Notes: generated by a model not told the origin, from the letters alone. 32,000 bases of DNA from Wallemia ichthyophaga EXF-994 (GCF_000400465.1 NW_008806291.1:90001-122000), one strand, 5' to 3'. Shown: positions 8,814 through 30,725, counted from the first letter of the stretch. Made by a program: numbers and translations.

Positions 8814-10461
8814 ATGAAATTAAAATTATTGTCACTAACGAATCTGGCTTTGTCGGCTTACGCTTTGCCCTCCTACGCTGATGGCTTATCCGCTTTCACC
8901 TCGTTCAACTTGGATAAAGGCATTTCCTCAATCCAATCCTCAATTGAATCATCTTTACAATCGTTTGGTTTAAACTTGTTCAATAACCACGATAAGCCCC
9001 TCGTTCTGTCTCATGATCAGTTCCCAAACCATCAAATTAGGTTGCATCATCCTACCTTGTGCGATTCCGGCGTCAAACAGTATTCTGGTTATATCGATAT
9101 CTCTGATTCAAAATCTTTGTTCTTTTGGTTCTTTGAGTCTCGCGCTGATCCTTCATCTGATCCTTTGGTTATGTGGTTGAACGGTGGCCCTGGTTGCTCC
9201 TCCTCCACTGGTCTTTTGACTGAACTTGGTCCTTGCAACATCGCTAATGACGGTCAATCAACTACTTACAATGACTACTCTTGGAACAACAACGCTAACT
9301 TGCTCTTCCTTGATCAGCCTATCAACGTTGGTTACTCTTATTCCGATTCTGATAATGTTAATACTACTCCTGCCGCCGCTGATGATGTCTACGCCTTCCT
9401 CCAGATCTTCTTTAAACACTATTCTTCATATGCCCACCTTCCTTTCTCTATCGCTGCTGAATCATACGGTGGTCGTTATGCTCCACTTATCGCTGACGTT
9501 ATCAACAATCATAATCAAATTGACAAGAGTCTTTATAGAATCAATGGCTCTTTTGATGACTTTAAACACATCAACTTGAAGTCTATCTTATTGGGTAATG
9601 GTTTAACCAATCCAAAAGTTCAATTCCCTTCTGTTTATGATTACGCCTGTCATGGCCCATATCAAATCTTCGAACCAAACGGATCCGAGTGCGCCAATCT
9701 TAAATCGAAAGCACATACCTGTGAAACTCTGATTGATACTTGCTACAAAACAGATAGTCGCTTTACTTGCTTACCTGCTGCTTTATACTGCTGTCGGTCA
9801 TCTTTTTTATTTTCTTATCTGTCTAATTCTAATCATAGGGTCTGGAATGTACGGCGCTTTCCAACAACTTGGCTTAAATCCTTATGATGTTCGTCAATCT
9901 TGTGATCGTGAGAAAGATGGTGATTTGTGCTACAAAGTTAGTTTCATAATATTCGAATTACTCTCACCCTGACATTTACAGGAAATGGACTGGATTCAAA
10001 CTTATTTAAACAAACCAGAAGTCAAAAAGCAACTTGGCGTTCCAAAATATATCGAGTTTCAGTCCTGCAACTTTGACGTAAACAGATCATTTATGGGCCA
10101 AGGAGATTCAATGCACAATTCAGCTGATCCTGCTATACCAAATCTCTTGGATTCTGGTGTTAGTGTTTTAATCTATGCTGGAAAAGCTGATTTCATGTGT
10201 AATTACATTGGAAACAAGCAATGGGTAGAACAGCTTTCTCATCCGCTTGGAAAAGAGATTGCCCAATCTGATGATAACGAGTGGTATTTCAATGGCAGAA
10301 AGGCCGCTTCGTACAAGTCAGCAAAACAAAGTGAAGCTCATCTTACATTCCTTGAAATTGAAGAAGCAAGCCATATGGTTCCAATGTCACAACCAGAGTT
10401 TTCCATCAATTTCTTCAACCAATGGATATTTGATCAATCTTTCAATAGCACTGGCATTTGA
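8814..10461 (+). CDS. PRC1: Serine carboxypeptidase S10 (carboxypeptidase Y-like); exons 8814-9792, 9839-9936, 9982-10461
   Basis: Signal peptide and propeptide, WLNGGPGCSS, catalytic AESYGG (Ser), GKADFMCN (Asp), ASHMVP (His). Introns 9793-9838 and 9937-9981. Confidence 0.93.
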
Positions 10462-10504
10462 ATTTGTTCACAAACTTGCAATGTATATTAAAGTTTGACC
10501 TTAC

Positions 10505-13071
10505 ATGTGAAGATAGACCGTATGTTCTCAAAGAATTGTAAATATTCACGTCTGTCATTTCGGTTGAGACTTGCTCATGTATTAGTGACGGTCCGAACCG
10601 CACAAGAAGCATATATAGTTTAACGTGCGTTACTGCTTACACTGAATAGTTTAATTCTAGTCCTTACATGAAGGTAACTTTCACTGTTTCGTAAGAGAGA
10701 TCTCGTTGCTATAATAAATTTCGATGGTTGAAATGGGATTGATGACTAGGTAAACGACATTAAGACCTAAAATAAACCAACGATATTACGTAACTTGATT
10801 GGACGCATTTATACGCAGCTTATCGCCGCTGTAGCCATTCTAGTCACATCACAATAAGGATTATGATCAGCAGGACGGTAAAGTTGAAGGACCTAGTCAT
10901 GCCTTTATCTTGACTAAGCTTTTGGATAAAATTCACTTGAAACTTATCAATTTACTGCATAAAAGAAGCACAATGTAACATTTTGCGTTTCAAAACCAGA
11001 CTGTAAATTTGCATACAAAAAAAGTTATGCGAAATCTTGCCTTTAGCTACTTGTATATGTTACATTGAGCTTTGACAACTTATTTACTTATCAGCTCGTA
11101 AGCGATTTTCATTTTTAAGCAAGTGTAGACAGAAAGATTTGGGGAGTTAAAAGATTTAAGAGCCTTGCTGGTAAGTCTAACTCGGGACAACAAATACTAA
11201 AGTTGATAATTGCCCCAAATACTTAAACACCGTGTTTGAGCTGCTAATTCTCAGATTGTTAATTCAAGTCTTACATCGTCGGCAGCATATTTAACAACAG
11301 CGAAACCCAACTTGCCGGAGCATTTTTTACTTGGTCAAAATTATTAAATGAATGATATGAAAGGTGTAATGATTTGATTCGCACTGAGTAAAGTTCGGCT
11401 GAAAACAACAATGAAACCCCATAGAACTCCCTTGAGGGGTAGTTCTACAATGAAAACAGTAAATTGAAAGGAAATCATGAATTAAGACAGGCATAGCGCG
11501 GTGAAACTGACTTAAGGTAACGACGATTCATATGATATGGTCATGAACAACTTAGGAATACGAAAACCGAAGCAGTGAAAGAAGTTTCGTAATGCCATCA
11601 ATGCATGATGATTATGGCAGCACATGGGAGATTTTGAAATCATTTACAAATAAAGATCGCAAAAAATTCAATTTAGTGTGAAATCAAAATTAATTCAGGT
11701 CGAAAATCATGACTTGCGTAATTCAAATAGACGATATCACTGCTACTCCTTAACATCCTAATCGAATAATTGCTACAATTTGCTGCTTGTTCTCACGACC
11801 ATTTCATGTGTGTTGATGTTGATATGTCAAACACGTGAAGGAATTTCACAATTCCTGAAGAACGACCAGTAATGGCATGTGACAAGTCTATTTTAAGCGA
11901 CAATTAGAAGAGAAGTCCTTAAAATCTTATTCAGCAATTTGGATCACTGCTACATCGCAAGGTTGCATACAAAGTGGTCACAAAATAAAAACAACCTAAA
12001 AGTATAGTCAAAAGAATAAAATAATTAATTGTTTAGTTGTAGTCCGAAACTAAAGCATCACGATTGGAAGAAACGTAAATTACACCTGGTTCAAAGCATA
12101 CCTGCTCTATGTTTATCTTTCATTAAGATTACTACTTAACGTTAAACAATTGTAAGTTTCAAGGTTTAGCATTAATTTGATACACCTTTTAATCAGGAAC
12201 ACTGAGGCCAAGGGGAATGCGAAATCTCCTTTCCTTATTGTGAAAGTAGACGTTTAACACAAAACATTTGCGTGAAAGTCTAATATCTGATGTTGTTTAC
12301 AAGTCATACATCATTATAAATGATATCAACTTCACAAGATCTTTGCTCGGATTAGTAGTTTCATTTTAGACATGTTTTGTTTCTTCAAGTCTTTTTCAAG
12401 TTAAATCTTGTTGCTTGTCAATGAAGACGTCTTTCGATGCTCTCTACCTCATTTTCAATACTGTGCGCTCAAAATCGTGATTAAAGACAATGTCTTAAAG
12501 CAGTCTAATGATTTTTATACGGTTAAATTTCAAGGTTTTAAAGCATTTACATTTGTCATGAATGTGATTGAAATTTCATTGCAATATATATACTTATTCA
12601 AGTGCACGACGACATTTCCTTTCCATAAAGTGTGAGTGAAATTGGTCATGAATTTCATATTTCAACGTTTAATCTTCTAAATATTGATTAACAAATTCTG
12701 ATGGACTTTTGTTAGACTTTTTTTCACCTTTACTTGCCGTTATAGCTATATAGGTTGGATGACGTCAATGCTTATTTGACTTGTGGGCTGCCCGTTGCGT
12801 TTTTTAGCTGATCACTTGATTGATATCATTTTCCTTCCAGACAATCTGCGAGTCTTGCTTTCATTTCCTAATTCAAAAGCAATCTCACTTGAGTTCTTAG
12901 ACTTTGATCTTGATTTCCCACTCCCTTGCTTTTCAGCTCAAATACAGGAGATTGGTCTCAATAATGACCTTCAATGTCATACCTTGTCACTTGTGAATCT
13001 GCTCACTTAATATCCCCATTAAGTTTAAAGACATTGAATTTGAGCTTGAAGTTTTTGCCTTTATTTGACAT
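10505..13071 (-). pseudogene. Putative Argonaute pseudogene (N-L1-PAZ-L2-MID-PIWI), many in-frame stops, a few frameshifts, C-terminal end missing
   Basis: Ordered degenerate motifs: GKNFKLKFNVFK..RYDIE (13059-12970), VLNVYFHNKERRFRIPLGLS and KP*NLQLF..KINIEQVCF (PAZ, 12260-12093), CEI..THEMVVRT (11850-11788), YHMNRR..RYACLN (11537-11481), LLLNMLP..DL..KHGV (MID, from 11300), NVTYT (11066; DVTHP), QLYRPADHNPYCDVT (10886-10842; QFYK..P..YRDGVS), FQPSKFII (10733), TRIKLF (10661). By-eye alignment only. Confidence 0.55.
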
Positions 13072-13989
13072 CGTGGAAGTCATTTGAACTTCTTTTCTTT
13101 TTTAGGCAATAGTTGTCACAATCAGATTTCGTCTTTGTCAAAATTCGATGACACCTTCAAATCATGATATCACATCCTTGATTATTATTTCTATTGCACT
13201 ATTTTAACGTATTTCTTATTTCGAGGCTTTTCACTTTGTAAAATTATTCCTTACCTTTGGTGAACAGTACTATGGAGTGAATGACCCTATGACTCGAAGA
13301 CTTCGTCATTACTGTTTATTTCCTTTTATTCAACTTTGTGTGTTGTAGTTATCGATTTTATGGGTGGATTCGGTATTTGATCTTATATGCTCCTACAAGT
13401 CCATCGTTAGAATCCATCGAGATTAGCAGTGAACAATTCTTGATGTACAATCGTTGTCTATATGTGAGTTTCATTAGCCAGTTTTATTAGAAACTCTGAA
13501 ATTTTGCATTGTCATTCATTCTATGTGACGGTTAGAAGACTCCCATGCGCTGGTTGCTACGCAAAACAGCAAAATACGACATGAAGAGTTTCTTTACGCA
13601 AAAGAGACATATACACCGCATCCCACAATGCCTCATTTTTTGAAGTGAGTTTAGTCTAGTGTTTGCTGTGGTCTTATTAGATAGTAAATATGACAATTCA
13701 ATGGAAACTGTCGTGTGTGGGGTTCTATGCGCTATACGGAAAATATTCCTAATTGAAGAATTGGGCTCTTATTGGCCATTCAATTTCCATATACAACTAC
13801 CTTAAGTGAGAAAATGTTTCGTTTTCCGATTGATCCTGAAGTCATCCTGCTAGCTGCAATTAAGACGCTCGCGCAAAGAAGATGTTGTACTTTTGTAGCT
13901 CGAAGGCGATAAAATTGGATTGAGATTGTAATTTATGGGTTTTCGTCACGATAGCACGATTTACACATGTCTTACACTCCTATGAATCT

Positions 13990-16100
13990 TACTTACTTTT
14001 GGCAGGATCACTTAAATTTTGCGCGTCAAACCAGCGACGTGCTACTGATTCATTTTAAGCGGCAATATTTCAGATAAACTAATGACATGCACTTACGGCT
14101 GATCTTCGAAATATCGCTCTACCATCTTTCTATCATGACTTAGCACTTACTAAGCAAACACGCCTATCGTATAAACCTGAATTAGCTCTTTAATTATACG
14201 TACATTGACGAGTCACCACACTGATATCATTGTTTTAACCATGTTAGTGTACGTCTTTTGGCCGATGGATAGATACTTAGTTGCGATCCTGAATAGCACA
14301 AACTATTTTCTGACTTTTTAGACGAGGTATGGACCAATTAGACGCCTTATCTGTCCAGTTTTATAGCTTCCCTTAATTTAAACGTTACCTAGCGCTCCTG
14401 AACGGTAGTATAGTGGGGAAATAGCGTTCCTTATTACTGCATAGTGATCACCGAATCTTTAGAAGACGAATAGACCATTTCAACTGTTGTAATTGGAGTC
14501 TTCAAAGGGTAATACATCTGCTCAATTTGTCACATGCCGGTTTGTTTACATGCTTAGTGTGTTATCGAGCGTGGCGTTGTTTCTCTTTGTGTGACGATTG
14601 TTTTAAGCGTTGTTTGCGGATGAGAGCGATTTTGGGAAAGTCTGTATCATCTCGCCCAAAAGCCATCGATGAACTGCAATCCTTTGTCTGTGGGCAATCC
14701 ATGTGACCGTAACAATTCAGATGTAGATCGGCGTTTGATTTGTACACGATTTTCCTTTATTTTTAAGAATTATATACACAGTGCCCTAATATTCTCCTAC
14801 TTTTCGGTTTTCCGTAGCCTGCAGTGATAAGGGTTTTTTCTAATAAAGTTTTAGTTGTATTGTTCACCGTGCATTCCTCTGTACACACATCTTACAATTC
14901 AAAGTATTTTCTGGGCGCAGTCAATTCATCCTTTCCATTATTTCAGACGATGGAGACCTGTCACTTAAAAGCAATAAGTTGGGGCCATTGGGATATTGCG
15001 TTTATTACGGGATTAATAGTACAGGAAATTAGTATGTGATTAAAGAATTCGATTGACTCATTAGCTTAACAACCAGGACGAGCACATCGAATTTGCTGAT
15101 ATCACATGGAGCGCGAGCTCTCATTTGTTCTGACTTTTTGTTATACAATAGGCTGTATTTGGCGAACCTAAATTGGTTTAAGCGAATTCAACAACCTTCA
15201 CGTTACAAATGAATGTGCTGCACGAACGAGAAATCATTTATGGCAGAATAAAAGGTTGCTAGAAACGTGATTTGCATGTCCGGGAAGTAAACATGTTGTT
15301 GTGCCAAGATATAGTGAAATCAGGAGCCTGTGTCTTAAGTTTTGCTTGTAGCAACAATGCAAGCTCCAAAGCACCCAAAGCCTTAGCTATCCGTTCGAAA
15401 CAATGGTGAAGCGTGCATGTGAGGCTTTTGAAATATGGTAGTGGTGACATCCAGCGGGTATTGGTTGAAGTGGCATGAATGGCGGCAACCACTGTGTCGG
15501 ACAAGACGCCTGAGAGCGGCGACGATGCAGTTAGCCAACTGAAAACTGCTAAAAATTGAGTGGAAGACTATTAAACTATCGTAAAGGTGTTAGCCAGTGA
15601 GCCTTTGTTCGTGCAGAGCTAATGGCGACCGGTCAGTAGAAGACTTGGAAGCCGGACAGTGAGGAATACCGCCAGCCTCATGGAGCCTGCTTTTGCATGC
15701 AAAGGAGGTCTATTTACCTAAGGTAAGGTGATAGCCAATCGCCTCCGGCCGATGTAGCGTCAATGGCGACCAGTAAGTATCCGATAATACACCCGAAAGT
15801 GACATGAGAACTAAACAGGTGAGCCGGGAGTGGGTCATAAAGCGACATATGAAGCGTCATACATTGCTTAATATTGATCCATGTGTCGACGCCGTTGATA
15901 AATGAAATTTGGACAACAACAAATATTGTACAAACTCGATAAGGGGCCTAAGCAGCTTGAAATCCTAACGTTTATTGCGATCAACGTTACGAACTGCGTG
16001 TTATTCATGCAACGAGTGATTTTCTCAGCTGATTGAAGAGGCACAAGAACACCGATTAAGACAATTTTAACGTTCTTAAAGAGTTTGCTACAATTACTTG
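13990..16100 (-). mobile_element. Highly degenerate Ty3/gypsy LTR-retrotransposon pol relic (RT-RNase H-integrase, possible chromodomain); gag and intact LTRs not seen
   Basis: Frameshifted motifs in canonical order: PLQSAEK (16041), VDTW..YDPLP (15890-15825), YWSPLTL (15775; YFSKLDL), TSFACKSRLHEAGGIP (15709; TAFRTKYGLYEYLVMP), CDIS (15106) and AISQW (14999) for RNase H, HGLPTDKGLQFIDGFW (14703-14656; HGLP..SDRGxQFxSxFW), HPQT (14622), WFDAQNL (14033; chromodomain WEPxENL). Confidence 0.75.
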
Positions 16101-16304
16101 AAGCCATTGGGCAGCGTTTACAGTTGATTTCAATAACACGCTCACTCCCTCTAACCAAAACCACAATTATCTCAACATGATACAGAAATACTGCAGTAAA
16201 GAGAGAATAGAGAGTGTTGTAGTTAGTGGTGATAGGCGTGTGGGTCTAGTGTACTTCAATTGTATACACACTCTCTAACAAAAACCTCCAACAGCTACTT
16301 GGTA

Positions 16305-16911
16305 ATGTGGCCGTTCACTACGAATAACAGCGAGCCTCAAAAGGGATGTCCATACAGCGAAGGTCAAGCAGACACCAGCAATCCAATTTTAAACAAAGAA
16401 GTCAGTAGCATACCCAAATCGTCAGGTAGTAATGATAATTGGGTGTATCCATCACAACTACAATTTTTTGAAGCTATGAATCGAAAGGGCCATAAGCCGA
16501 ATCCAAAGGATATGAACACAATTGTTCCCATTCATAATGCCGTTAACGAAAGAGCTTGGATGGAGATAAAGAAATGGGAAGATGGTAAAAGCGACTGTAA
16601 AGTTTATTTGCACAGCTTTAAGGGTCGCCCAAACGATAGATCGCCGAAAGCCTGGCTTAAGACTGCTTTAGGGTACTTGAATTGCTTTTACTCACTCAGA
16701 TATGACTAACGTTTCTCGCAGATACATGCCTCCTTTTGACAGACACGATTGGATCATAGATCGCTGCGGACAGCGTGTACGATACGTTATTGATTTTTAC
16801 GCAGGTTCTAACAAGCTGGGCCTTGATACACCGTCATTCTACTTGGACGTAAGACCAGCTATAGATGATCTTGATAGTATTACAATGCGTTTGTCGAGAT
16901 TTATCATGTAA
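16305..16911 (+). CDS. HCCS: Cytochrome c/c1 heme lyase (holocytochrome c synthase); exons 16305-16672, 16732-16911
   Basis: CP heme-regulatory motif (GCPY), [59 protein letters not shown]. 59-nt intron. CYC3 versus CYT2 not resolved. Confidence 0.92.
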
Positions 16912-22628: not shown

Positions 22629-24073
22629 TTAGTTGATTTCGCTATCGCTATCTTTACTAAAGTTTACTTTCTTCTTTTTTCTACTCGAGCGTGTCGATCT
22701 TCTTGTCTGAGGCGGTGGTAATTGTGGCGGTGGTAGCGGAGGTGGTGGAGATAGTGACGACTCTCTCGACTGTGCTGATTCAGAAGGGGACTTTTCTTCT
22801 TTGGCAGTCTCCGCCAAACGTTTGGAGGGTACCTTAATTTGTTTATCAGGACTAATAATGGTTGTGACTACTCCTGGTACAACGTCAACTTTCTCTTTAC
22901 TATCCTCAACCTTAATGTTATTAATCTCAGCTGTGCTTTCCTTGTCCTTAGTAGAAGGCGATTGATCTTTGAATGCTTTCAAATCCGCAGCGAAAAGTAC
23001 CTATATTTGATCAGAAAAACACCGGCTAGTCTAAATTTTCAAGAAAATAAATAACCTACAGTATGTGCCCAGCCAGCGTATGGACCCCATAAATCCCTGA
23101 ACATTTTACCAACAGCAGCGTAAATGGAAGGGTTCATAGGAGTAGATTGAGTAACTTTTCTACCTTTGCATAGCTTAACATAAGAGGATTCTAGGAAATT
23201 GTAATCTCTTATTGCAATTTGCCAAACGTGAGTATCAACTGGAATGCTATCAAATTGATCTAGTGACATCAACGCAACGCAATCAGCAACTTTTGGACCA
23301 ACACCCATCAAGCGAGTGAGTTGGGGTATAACAACATCGTAAGGATCTTTTCGAAGTTGACATAAGTAATCGAAAACGCCTTGATCAGTTTTGTGTTCAT
23401 CTAATAAAGTCAAAGCAACATGATGAACATATTTTGCTCTATAACCGAAACCTAATTGGCGTAAATCGTCTTCAACACCATTTTGTGATAATTTAGAAGG
23501 AGGTGGAAAGGGATGTCTATTATAAACTTGATCAACATCCTTCAAAGGTTCAGAGAATTTGAATGATAACTTATTTATCATTTGACTGTTTTAATTTGTT
23601 AATCAGAGCTAAAGAAATGGAGTAAACGGACGAGATACGTGAAATGTTGTTATTTGAAGAGCAAATGAAACTGATAAGACATTCCCAAGGGTCTTGTCTA
23701 AGAATGAGAATGCCATTGAACTTGTTTGTCGTATTGATGAGATTAAAGTGATTATCTCTAGCAGACCAATCTTTATATAAGTGATCCAAATCAATGCCTA
23801 ATTGAAAGTAATCCTTTATAAAGTCAAGATCTTTATCAAAATCCAATGGAAAAGAAGAAAATTCCAAAGCATTTGGGATCGACTGTTTAAGTATGATAGT
23901 TCTATCGCGTAGTGCTAGACTGAATTCATTTGTTGTTGTGTTATGCATCCACTGTATAACATTGATAAGAATTTCGACTGTTGAAGACTCTAAAGACACA
24001 CCCTAAAAGATTGACCACACTTCAATACTATACTGATGTTTATTTTAAAATTGTCTAGCGTCCGCCATTTCAT
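22629..24073 (-). CDS. OGG1: 8-oxoguanine DNA glycosylase/AP lyase with low-complexity C-terminal tail, multi-exon
   Basis: LKCGQSFRW (after splicing), ILRQDPWECLISFICSSNNNISRI, LGFGYRAKY, HhH MGVGPKVADCVALMSL..IPVDTHV, WGPYAGWAH. Confidence 0.95.
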
Positions 24074-24095: not shown

Positions 24096-24652
24096 ATGGT
24101 ACGGTTCAAGGTTAGTTTAGATTAATTGGTTAAATTATGAAGCTAATAATTTTACTGCGTAATAGAATAGATGGATAATTGCTGAGTTCATCTTTGAAGA
24201 TAACTTACCTGGCTGTAATCGTACTTCAAAACCAATTTCAACTTCTATAGATTCAAGGCATATATTGCAATCTATTAGAAGAAATATTTCCGTTCACTTT
24301 GGTGATTTAGGTGCTGCATCTGTTGCAAACTCCTTATCGCGTTAGTTGCAAACACTGTTTTATGCTTTGTTGACAAGTTATAGTCAAGTATTACTCTGCT
24401 AATACACGTCTTGGTATATTTAGAGTCGCAAGGAATTGTAAGGATGTTTTACAAGCAACTCTCACCTTAACTACCTCTTTATCTAATCATCCAGTCATTA
24501 TCAGAGTAATTCACGTCAGTGGTACAATTAGGAAGGTACAAGAAGCCGCTATTAAGTATGATAGGCAGATTATACTGAATAGCTTTACTAGTAATGATTT
24601 GGATGAAGAAATGCAGTTATCCAAGAATGGTATCATGTCAATTGAATCTTAA
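24096..24652 (+). CDS. POP5: RNase P/MRP protein subunit Pop5; exons 24096-24110, 24166-24340, 24384-24652
   Basis: MVRFKNRWIIAE.., HFGDLGAASV..SLKYYS, IRVIHVSGTIRKVQEAAIKYDR. Not in the ORF track. Confidence 0.9.
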
Positions 24653-27924: not shown

Positions 27925-30725
27925 ATGGCTTCGTTTGAAAGATTACGACAGATTTGGGAAGATCGCACTCCAGGAGAGCTAGAACAATTGCAAAAGCCTA
28001 TTTTGAATGAAGCACCGCCTCGACCGCCAATTTCGACCAAGCCATCAAAGTCCTCTTATTCTTCTGAATCGCTCCCAACATTATCTAAGCATCGAAGAGC
28101 ACCACCTGAACCGCCAACAAGCCGGCTAGCGCCACCAATTCCTCCAAAACATACAAAAGCTAGCTTCAGCTCAGACAATTTACATCAGAGACCTACAGCG
28201 ACCCCATCACCCTCACCTAACCCTTATTTGGTTGAACGAAGTCACACTGCAATTCCTTCAAACTCGAGTGCAACTCTCTCAAATAATGGTTACTCTAGTG
28301 AAAGCGATGAAGATGAATTTTACGTTGATGATAGTTCTGTGGCAGGTCCACAGGCTAGACGTGCGCCAAGCATACTACCCGACGTTTCCCATGCCAATAG
28401 GCGCGCTCCAAAACTAAAGTTGTACCACTCCGTTAGTTCAAAAGGTCACTTCTTTAGTGCGGCTTCGTCAAACAATTTTGTCGTAACTGGTAGTCATCAC
28501 TTACGTATTTATGACGCATCAAATTCAAACAACAGCGATGTACCATTCTTTGAATCTCCAGATAAAGACACAAGAATAACTTCAATAACATTCAAGCAAT
28601 CGAATGGCTCTGTATTTTGGGGCGGAACTAAGGACGGTTCGTTGTTTGAAATGGATGCAATCGATGGGACATGCTTTGATTGGAAGACGTACGAACATTC
28701 AGGTGCAATCATTGGTATATGGAGACTGAACAATCATATGATCTCACTTGATGATGCTGGAGTTCTTAAAGTCTGGTTACCTGTCACGCATTCAGATGGT
28801 AGCGTTATACCCACACTCAAATCACCAACCAAATTATTCCGCATCAACTCTGATATCACATTTGCTAACTTCCTAGGCGACAAACTTTGGCTGGCCTCTT
28901 CTACCAGTCTAAGCGCTGATCCGAATGTTGTAAAGACGATCACTTTAAGGGTTTATGATCCAATAGGTGCTACGTATGGTGGCCAATTAAACCTAACACC
29001 TAATCCTCTTATACCCTCATCAACAGTTCAACAATTAGCAGTCACAAGTGGTACAGTAATACCTTCAGTACCTGATAAAATATACCTTGGACATCAAGGA
29101 GGTTTCGTTAGCGTTTGGAATGGCAAAGACTTCACCTTTTTAGGCGCTCTTAAAGTATCATCCACTCAAGTTGATGCTTTAGCTGGTGTTGGTGGCTATT
29201 TATGGGCTGGTTTCCATAGCGGTAGAATCAACGTCCTAGATACAAACCAGGGCTCAATGACTGACTGGAGAGTGGTACAAACTTGGCAGGCTCATAAAGA
29301 AAAAGTGTTGTCTATACAAGTTGACACTGCTTTATTGGAAACTGGTATGCTGGCTGTGATTACAACAGGCGCAGATTGGAATGTGAACTACTGGGATGGT
29401 ATGTTGAAAACTGCCCATGTCTCTACGGAATTACAAAACAGAGAAAATACGTTCTGCTCGTTTACACCGGTTAATTTGCTAATAGTGTCGTGGAACACTG
29501 ACGCTTCAAAACCTTCCGATTTAATTGATAGTCATAAAAGTGGATTTTTTTCAAAGTCAAGCCATACCAATAACGATAATTCATCATTTCTTCGAAAAGC
29601 ACTATCAAGTACTGAAAGTCCTGATATCATTGTCTTCGGGTTTCAGGAATTGATAGATTTAGAAGATAAGAAGCTCACTGCCAAAACCATGCTGCTACCT
29701 AAGAAGAAAGCTGACAGCGCATTGTCTGAACGCATCTCTCACTCTTATAGGCTGTGGTATGACCATTTGGTCATGGAAGTCGAAAGAAATATGCCAAAAA
29801 GTAGTCCATACGTTGTATTGCATGCTGAAAACTTGGTTGGATTATTTACTTGCATCTTTGTTCGTAAAGAGAACAGGGAAAATTTAGCTGACGTTGCCAT
29901 TACAACTGTTAAAACTGGACTAAAGGGTAGATATGGCAACAAAGTCCGTACTTGCTAAGATATTAGATTAAGCTAACTAGTATTTATAGGGTGCTATTAT
30001 ATCTAGATTCGTCCTCGATGACTCCTCTTTCTGTTTCATTAATTGCCATCTTGCTGCAGGACAGAAGCATACGAAGCAACGTAATCAAGACTTAGTTTCA
30101 ATATTGGAAGAAAAGGTAGCTTTTGCAAACGATCCAGTCAGATCTGAGCTAAGTTATGTTAATGGAGGTGATGGATCCAGTGTCTTTGACCATGAAACAA
30201 CATTCCTCAATGGCGATGTGAGTGATACTGTGCTACATTGGCTACACAATCTGATAATTTCAGCTTAATTATAGAGTTGATCTTCGTCGTGAAGCGGTTT
30301 TACCAGCAATAACAAAATCAAACTTTGAATACCTACTAAATCACGATCAACTTAACAAACAAATGGAAACTAACGCACAATTCAAATTAAGAGACTTTAA
30401 AGAGCCACCAATAACTTATGCACCGACATACAAGTATGACAGAAAGACAAATGTTTATGATACATCGGATAAGAGAAGAACACCTGCCTGGTGTGATCGA
30501 ATACTATCACGTACAGTACACTTGCCAAGAGTTAGCAATTTACATTACAAGAGGTATGAAGTGAACGTCTCAGATCATAGACCGATTTCGGCCGCTTTTC
30601 AAGTACAGACAAAAAAGATTGATCATGCAAAGAGGAGTAATGTCTTGTTAGATGTTGAGAATGAGTTTGGCAGTATATTTGCTGAGACTATAAATGATGA
30701 AAAGAGGTATTATGAATACAAGTAA
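27925..30725 (+). CDS. Inositol polyphosphate 5-phosphatase with Pro-rich N-terminus and WD40-like region; introns near 29944-29989 and 30219-30263
   Basis: IPPc motifs VSWNT, PDIIVFGFQEL, GNKGA..CFINCHLAAGQ, NGDLNYR, PTYKYD..KRRTPAWCDRIL, VSDHRPI. Confidence 0.9.

Follow-up and report, generated by a model that had tools for sequence, protein, structure and literature searches.

Why would a genome as densely packed with genes as that of the salt-loving fungus Wallemia ichthyophaga keep 5.8 kb of DNA without any? The question is raised by a stretch of 32,000 nucleotides from strain EXF-994 (GCF_000400465.1 NW_008806291.1:90001-122000; here called the window, with positions counted from its first letter), in which a gene for a serine carboxypeptidase of the Peptidase_S10 family (S10) and a gene for a cytochrome c/c1 heme lyase are separated by an interval, 10462-16304, that holds no intact gene. 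The whole genome comprises 9.6 Mb and is about 72% coding (PMC6738226; PMC3849046), which makes an empty interval of this size exceptional. A first-pass annotation of the window had proposed that this interval, referred to below as the gap, is a short regional centromere. As a candidate the idea stands, on the strength of a hyperdiverse and apparently non-recombining core, a local minimum in GC content and a position at a synteny breakpoint, whereas the arguments from fossil genes and from preserved old junk with which it had been introduced do not hold. From the DNA sequence, we put the probability that this chromosome of W. ichthyophaga has its short regional centromere in the gap, with a fast-mutating core of unique sequence, at roughly one in two.

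The gene desert is real, as the first-pass annotation had stated. The gap contains no open reading frame (ORF) of more than 98 amino acids starting with ATG, GTG or TTG, stop codons appear at intervals of about 16 codons in each of the six frames, close to the rate of about 1 in 15 that chance would give at 37.5% GC, and the NCBI annotations of nine other W. ichthyophaga strains leave the same interval empty. The longest open frame of the gap, 125 codons on the minus strand (15871-16245), has no homologue among 1.84 billion representative proteins. Searching the six frames of the gap with hmmscan against Pfam (stops replaced by X) returned no match at E<=1, including none to PAZ/PIWI, reverse transcriptase, integrase or gag domains. 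The tRNA scan of the gap was empty, no Rfam family reached its gathering threshold, and the sole Rfam match at E<=1, to FTX_3 with E 0.93, is attributed to chance. No gene or RNA family was found in the right shoulder of the gap (13303-16304), and folding of the GC-rich patch at 15380-15860 gave no structure signal on either strand relative to shuffled sequences (z +0.4 and +0.9). When the gap was compared by tblastx and blastn with the W. mellicola genes beside S10 and heme lyase and with the tail of the W. hederae contig, only the boundary genes matched. The recovery by tblastx of an unannotated gene elsewhere in the window, Rpp14, serves as positive control for the tblastx comparison. Rpp14 lies in what appeared to be a 1.1-kb space between OGG and LUC7 and is absent from the W. 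ichthyophaga strain annotations, so that this space is an annotation miss; it was the only apparent exception to the earlier statement that the other intergenic gaps of the window are short.

Repetitive DNA is equally lacking. Direct or inverted repeats longer than 27 nt were not detected in the gap, nor any beyond chance, and LTRs (long terminal repeats) are therefore absent; the tandem-repeat search gave nothing beyond chance, and neither the window nor the fetched loci contain another copy of the gap. The first-pass annotation had described the interval as containing only fossils, namely LTR remnants and a dead Argonaute gene. This description has no support, because Pfam matches at E<=1, repeats and similarity to neighbouring genes are all missing. 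A search of the gap for a telomerase template or telomere repeats also found nothing. A relic of a telomere-to-telomere fusion was considered as well and was rejected for lack of interstitial telomere repeats, as the core has no TTAGGG/CCCTAA hexamer and the gap in its entirety a single one, a frequency equal to the background.

The positive evidence comes from variation among strains. The window segment 6303-26911 was aligned with the corresponding loci of nine W. ichthyophaga strains, and nucleotide diversity (pi) was calculated per 250 bp. In the flanks (14.7 kb), pi ranges from 0 to 0.5%. Inside the gap, it rises smoothly in a bell-shaped curve to a summit of 10.3%, where the largest pairwise difference reaches 18%. 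On the right side, diversity has fallen by about 13.5 kb, and on the left side it drops abruptly at the S10 gene, with a slight rise already in the last 0.9 kb of S10 (0.53% at 9553-10052). For the core (10900-13100), pi amounts to 7.8%, compared with 0.28% for third codon positions in the ORFs on either side and 0.49% for the far right of the gap (14300-16304); the right shoulder presumably includes the heme lyase promoter. The core thus exceeds these local neutral yardsticks roughly 16-28 fold.

This variation consists almost entirely of point substitutions. The gap has 488 variable sites versus 21 indel events of 1-2 bp each; the differences are evenly spread and not arranged in tracts, and the length of the gap stays at 5,839-5,844 bp in all ten W. 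ichthyophaga sequences compared (the window and the nine strains). Among 141 polarised changes, T>C (46) and C>T (35) are followed by T>A (28), T>G and C>A (12 each) and C>G (8), with a transition/transversion ratio of about 1.1. Changes from AT to GC nearly balance those from GC to AT, which indicates a compositional equilibrium near 35-40% GC. A:T>T:A and A:T>G:C changes are relatively commoner in the gap than in the flanks, and the trinucleotide contexts WA, CpG and TC show no clear signature at these counts. ORFs common to different haplogroups do not exist. Conserved islands do not stand out in the core either, except for a 51-bp run (10964-11014) at the edge of the hypervariable zone, which is invariant in 10/10 sequences and exceeds the 99th percentile of shuffled data (47). 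This run overlaps one arm of a 16-nt inverted repeat (10966-10981/11057-11072; arms 94% complementary and 75 nt apart). The first-pass annotation had seen in the gap old junk that is preserved under constraint. The opposite was observed: within the 20 kb compared, no other DNA changes as fast as the gap, and its length alone is stable.

The ten sequences fall into three clades, designated A (the window and strain loci L015, L002 and L014), B (L001) and C (L003, L004, L005, L012 and L013). A fourth haplogroup is represented by L027, an independent Logan contig that differs by 11-14% from all others in the core and by 0.3% in the flanks. Clades A and C are about 10.5-11% apart in the core and 0.13% apart in the flanks. 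The excess recurs within the clades: 2.9% in the core versus 0.05% in the flanks within A, and 0.7-1.5% versus 0.06-0.08% within C. Even the near-clonal pair of the window and L015 (GCA_004917865.1) is separated by three differences, all of which fall in the gap, and the 14.7 kb of flanks are identical. For the right shoulder (13.3-16.3 kb), the pairwise distances reproduce the tree of the core at a scale 5-9 fold smaller. An excess at every depth of divergence, together with the near-clonal pair, points to a higher rate and not just old alleles, and we favour a raised mutation rate over old alleles as the source of the diversity peak. Some room is left for a contribution of unusually deep coalescence, since the haplogroups, four in number, are star-like in depth and L027 departs from proportionality.

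The pattern of sites also speaks to recombination, which the first-pass annotation had suggested might be suppressed here. Two nested splits account for 236 of the 266 informative sites in the gap (89%), with 178 separating A from the rest and 58 separating A+B from C, and the incompatible site patterns comprise 1-3 sites each, as recurrent mutation would give. No mosaic haplotypes or recombination inside the gap were seen in a four-gamete analysis, which with ten sequences has limited power; within that power, the supposition is borne out. L014 belongs to clade A in the gap and to clade C in the right flank, which shows exchange beside the gap. Across the species, linkage disequilibrium (LD) decays to half within about 1.3 kb (PMC6738226). 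A mating-type (MAT) locus was considered and rejected: SXI1, HMG, STE3, BAP31 and CAF1 are absent from the window, the window sequence is absent from the published MAT alignment, and MAT consists of two classes with an inversion, whereas the gap has at least four haplogroups, each of them internally diverse.

With regard to base composition, the AT-richness claimed by the first-pass annotation is confirmed locally and is mild overall. The segment 12001-12060 indeed has 15 G+C in 60, and the GC content reaches its minimum of 31-34% at 11.8-13.3 kb (1-kb minimum about 32% at 12.0-12.5 kb), close to the diversity summit; the gap as a whole has 37.5% GC versus 38.1% in the window, and a GC-rich patch at 15.3-15.8 kb reaches 48-50%. 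CpG is not depleted in the gap, and the ratios TpA/ApT (0.78) and (CpA+TpG)/(ApC+GpT) (1.24) are equal to those of the flanks. Repeat-induced point mutation (RIP) was rejected as a source of the variation on the basis of these flank-like dinucleotide indices, the low transition/transversion ratio, the small share of C>T among the polarised changes (35/141) and the single-copy nature of the sequence. At about position 12079, a purine excess on the plus strand turns into a pyrimidine excess; the trend-corrected cumulative purine excess has a range of 289, versus a maximum of 171 in 1000 shuffles.

Comparison with relatives places the gap at an evolutionary breakpoint. To its left, the order SET, BRCA2, CKII-beta, EF-hand and S10 is common to W. 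ichthyophaga and W. mellicola, and to its right, both species have heme lyase, Drf_GBD, DUF4336, DnaJC11, OGG, Rpp14, LUC7 and Gaa1 in the same order. In W. mellicola, Ima1 and further genes begin 409 bp past S10, at a locus separate from that of heme lyase, which has ADA2 423 bp upstream. Since S10 and heme lyase thus have different neighbours there, the gap coincides with a breakpoint relative to W. mellicola. In the sister species W. hederae, an array of an 8-bp repeat starts about 400 bp past the S10 stop codon and reaches the end of the contig; its unit, CATAAATG, was not found in the W. ichthyophaga window. In a further relative, present in SRR25399871 at about 82% DNA identity, the DNA upstream of heme lyase is poor in ORFs and unalignable over at least 2.4 kb, again up to the contig end. 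The ichthyophaga/hederae lineage therefore seems to keep something unusual between S10 and heme lyase, which W. mellicola does not.

W. mellicola has peculiarities of its own near the two genes. In strain CBS 633.66, inverted repeats of about 340 bp (L018 11777-12114 and 16268-16604; 90-98% identical, depending on the strain contig) enclose 4.1 kb with Ima1_N and a 572-aa gene directly after S10, and all short-read assemblies of the species break at both arms; the 4.1-kb segment may be invertible. Hyperdiversity beside S10 in W. mellicola, as suggested by Ima1 at 82-90% identity and by 4.5-kb contigs, was rejected, because the DNA is actually 99.5% identical and the breaks come from these inverted repeats. 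At 6-10 kb upstream of heme lyase (L006-L011, 1-4000), W. mellicola has two haplotype classes, L006-L009 on the one side and L010 and L011 on the other, which share no homology over the first 1.8 kb. The two classes differ by 18% at 2-3 kb and by 4% at 3-4 kb, within a Usp gene, and the difference is at baseline beyond. Diversity within these classes is only mildly raised, and the segment extends past the fetched locus. It may belong to the margin of the MAT locus or represent some other long-standing structural dimorphism.

A short regional centromere is the best reading of the W. ichthyophaga gap, as it explains most of the observations with one idea: the interval is free of ORFs, has a local GC minimum, changes fast and yet keeps its length, shows no internal recombination, lies at a breakpoint and corresponds to a satellite array or an ORF-poor contig end in relatives. 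Such a centromere would be specified epigenetically and not by sequence. CENP-A and the kinetochore would occupy a putative core at about 10.55-13.3 kb, made up of 2.5-3 kb of unique and mildly AT-rich sequence, while the right 3 kb of the gap would be pericentric or promoter spacer. Centromeric chromatin or fork stalling could lift the local base-substitution rate roughly 25-30 fold, and the raised rate would produce a bell-shaped curve of diversity with its summit where the kinetochore binds. The whole gap would be held together as one haplotype block by suppressed crossing-over. If function follows from position and size and not from sequence, as proposed, the length would be kept while the sequence is free to change. 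More specifically, the core may be a unique-sequence centromere that gains substitutions, with almost no indels, at about 25-30 times the neutral level and that sits at a breakpoint which arose in the W. ichthyophaga/W. hederae lineage; this fuller version is put forward tentatively, at clearly less than even odds.

How well does the gap match known fungal centromeres? The centromeres of Malassezia span 3-5 kb, have an AT-rich core at GC troughs and in some cases lie at synteny breaks (PMC7025860). Their cores are smaller than 1 kb, with marked GC troughs and a 12-bp AT-rich motif (PMC7025860), while the GC dip in the gap is only 4-7 points. In addition, the kinetochore-bound region of Malassezia overlaps active genes, in contrast to the 5.8 empty kb of the gap. 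The likeness, taking M. sympodialis CEN1-8 for comparison, consists of a few-kb region with an AT-richer intergenic core in a very compact basidiomycete genome, of unique sequence free of transposons, and of the coincidence of some centromeres with interspecies synteny breakpoints. Within-species hyperdiversity has, to our knowledge, not been reported for Malassezia centromeres. In Candida albicans, C. dubliniensis and C. lusitaniae, CENP-A occupies epigenetically defined centromeres of 3-5 kb of unique sequence, which are free of ORFs and repeats, differ from chromosome to chromosome and diverge much faster than their syntenic flanks. The gap shares the lack of ORFs and repeats and the faster divergence, but these species are ascomycetes, and their fast centromere evolution was shown between species and not as a 30-fold peak within one. 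Overall, the gap resembles the Malassezia and Candida types in being a few kb long, ORF-free and non-repetitive; it evolves faster than neutral DNA (7.8% versus 0.28%), and its position is kept in ten strains, but not in W. mellicola.

The point centromeres of Saccharomyces provide a precedent for the pattern of variation. They evolve faster than neutral DNA through a general rise in mutation rate (Bensasson 2011, PMC3155921), and crossing-over and gene conversion are absent inside them, with recombination adjacent (PMC3155921). In the gap, polymorphism is likewise confined to the region, with recombination beside it and none seen inside. The differences are considerable, because Saccharomyces centromeres are about 120 bp long, genetically defined and show a 3-fold excess, compared with about 3 kb and about 30 fold here. 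With Cryptococcus and Ustilago, to which the first-pass annotation had pointed, the gap shares the condition of an ORF-free region in a basidiomycete. Their centromeres, however, are tens of kb of LTR-retrotransposon remnants, whereas the gap is only 5.8 kb long and lacks reverse transcriptase, integrase, gag and LTR-like repeats, so that a centromere of the retroelement type does not apply.

Several observations weigh against a centromere. At about 30 fold, the substitution excess surpasses the 3-fold value of yeast point centromeres by a factor of ten, and some other mutagenic process could therefore be involved. Neither orthologous junction in W. mellicola contains a gene-free interval, and the position is consequently not kept across the genus. 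The GC dip is small (31-34% versus 38%), and within the visible 32 kb some flanking 250-bp windows are equally low. The switch from purines to pyrimidines differs from the GC/TA skew that is expected of a replication origin. Finally, the window in its full length is poorer in GC than the genome (38% versus 45.4%), and GC at third codon positions (GC3) is uniformly low and flat across the 32 kb, without a V-shape around the gap. This low regional level deserves a wider view. The W. ichthyophaga genome has 45.35% GC, with 47.5% in coding sequence (PMC3849046), whereas the window ORFs average 39% GC and 34% GC3. W. hederae has 49.6% GC genome-wide and 49% in the orthologous left flank, and GC3 of its EF-hand gene is 76% versus 33% in the window. 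In the SRR25399871 relative, the heme lyase side has 36% GC and another locus 49.6%. Wallemia genomes thus seem to have sharply different GC compartments, and a GC-poor compartment would fit a pericentric domain of low recombination, although this is suggestive only.

Other explanations share part of the evidence with a centromere. The most serious, which we nevertheless regard as unlikely, is a mutation hotspot without centromere function, in a functionless spacer at a rearrangement breakpoint: some local feature, such as a fragile or late-replicating site, fork stalling or error-prone repair, would raise the rate in an interval that awaits deletion. The synteny break with W. mellicola, a core with no conserved island other than the invariant 51 bp at its edge, a broad mutation spectrum with base composition near equilibrium and the failure of Pfam and Rfam searches to return any functional annotation would all be expected of such a site. 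It is harder to see why junk in a compact genome should keep a length of 5,839-5,844 bp, with indels of 1-2 bp only, across haplotypes that are up to 14% apart in the core, and why, in two relatives, the corresponding sites lack genes or carry a satellite and also interrupt assemblies, which suggests a maintained feature. We also know of no fungal precedent for a 3-kb, 30-fold hotspot outside centromeres. If, instead, coalescence were deep and the rate normal, the peak could reflect ancient balanced haplotypes of a functional non-coding element, for instance one that acts in regulation or as a long non-coding RNA, or haplotypes that persist through linkage to a centromere. The existence of at least four deep haplogroups, 6-14% apart between flanks that differ by only 0.1-0.4%, agrees with this idea, as do the decay of the peak over about 1 kb, near the LD decay distance of the species, and the core divergence of L027, which is not proportional to its flank divergence. 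Simple balancing selection, however, predicts low diversity within each class, and the contrary is seen, with within-haplogroup diversity raised 5-50 fold and scaling with between-group divergence across the gap. Since near-clonal genomes moreover differ in the gap only, and no ORF, RNA family or conserved block was found as a target of selection, balanced haplotypes are improbable.

Still less probable is a field of decayed genes and retroelements, such as a dead Argonaute gene and LTR remnants, possibly with unannotated genes or RNAs, that has no centromere function. Two convergent former transcription units might leave a purine-rich left and a pyrimidine-rich right side of about 12.08 kb, a few long minus-strand frames are open at 15.26-16.25 kb, and the case of Rpp14 demonstrates that genes of this genome can be missed in annotation. 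Against this stand the empty Pfam search at E<=1, the absence of repeats and LTRs, the random density of stop codons, the lack of similarity to the W. mellicola neighbour genes and a longest frame without a homologue in the 1.84 billion proteins searched; gene decay also does not account for a 30-fold peak in present-day polymorphism. An artefact, caused by a collapsed or chimeric assembly of paralogous copies or by misalignment, is very improbable. Contigs do end here, that of L005 at the border of S10 and the gap (window 10401) and the Logan contigs of L027 and L028 at 11253 and 13099, and breaks at the border or in the core possibly result from mixed strains or a low-complexity graph structure. 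Yet ten independent assemblies agree in a single copy of equal length between the same flanking genes, the variation is phylogenetically structured, as the nested splits demonstrate, the window and L015 hardly differ over the length of the gap, and the alignments are gap-poor at 86-99% identity, without a second copy in the window or the fetched loci.

The table lists the positions of the gap, of its subdivisions and of the genes that define its surroundings. The window genes are fungal, with short introns. S10 ends with a TGA stop codon at 10459-10461, and the gap begins with the next base; exon 1 of S10 (326-aa query) is 100% identical to W. ichthyophaga EXF-994 protein P0129. The spliced heme lyase is 99% identical to W. 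ichthyophaga P0001 and 79% identical to its W. mellicola counterpart. Further to the right, the OGG1-like glycosylase is modelled with 297 aa in W. ichthyophaga strains versus 437 aa in W. mellicola, which may be a difference between gene models rather than a truncation. A 677-aa ORF at 27925-29958 has no exact-protein record, and the actual gene is spliced.

Table. Features of the window and, in the last line, of the W. hederae contig
Feature	Position	Strand	Remarks
Peptidase_S10 serine carboxypeptidase, left boundary gene	8814-10461	+	Short introns; Pfam PF00450, 1e-71 and 2e-30
Gene-free interval (gap)	10462-16304		5,843 bp; nothing beyond chance in ORF, Pfam, Rfam and repeat searches; empty in strain annotations
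Hyperdiverse core	10553-13302		pi at least 2.7% in every 250-bp window; unique sequence
Diversity summit	11803-12552		pi 10.3% at 11803-12052; GC minimum 31-34%; purine/pyrimidine switch
Right shoulder	13303-16304		pi falling to roughly neutral; includes GC-rich patch 15300-15800
Cytochrome c/c1 heme lyase, right boundary gene	16305-16911	+	Exons 16305-16672 and 16722-16911; 49-bp intron
OGG1-like DNA glycosylase	23039-23999	-	OGG_N and HhH-GPD ORFs both in window
Rpp14 (RNase P/MRP subunit)	24163-24583	+	Three exons; tblastx E 8e-36 vs W. mellicola gene
W. hederae 8-bp array, CATAAATG	L016 12090-12679		72.6 copies, 84% matches, at least 590 bp

In the literature searched, we found no description of a Wallemia centromere, and the population-genomics paper on the same strains does not mention the gap locus (PMC6738226). 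If the gap is a centromere, it would be the first centromere model for the subphylum Wallemiomycotina and would show that basidiomycetes other than Malassezia also have small centromeres without repeats. The diversity signature could then locate the remaining W. ichthyophaga centromeres in existing data. Either way, W. ichthyophaga has a 3-kb single-copy region that carries about 30 times the diversity of synonymous-like sites, almost all of it as point substitutions and in one non-recombining block. Why centromeres evolve so rapidly, a question that satellite centromeres do not allow to be tested, becomes directly testable here. If the core is indeed a centromere that gains substitutions at such a rate, no natural example of mutagenesis linked to the kinetochore or to centromeric chromatin would be clearer, and, as the fungus is haploid with a genome of 9.6 Mb and the core can be assembled from short reads, the process would be open to direct measurement.

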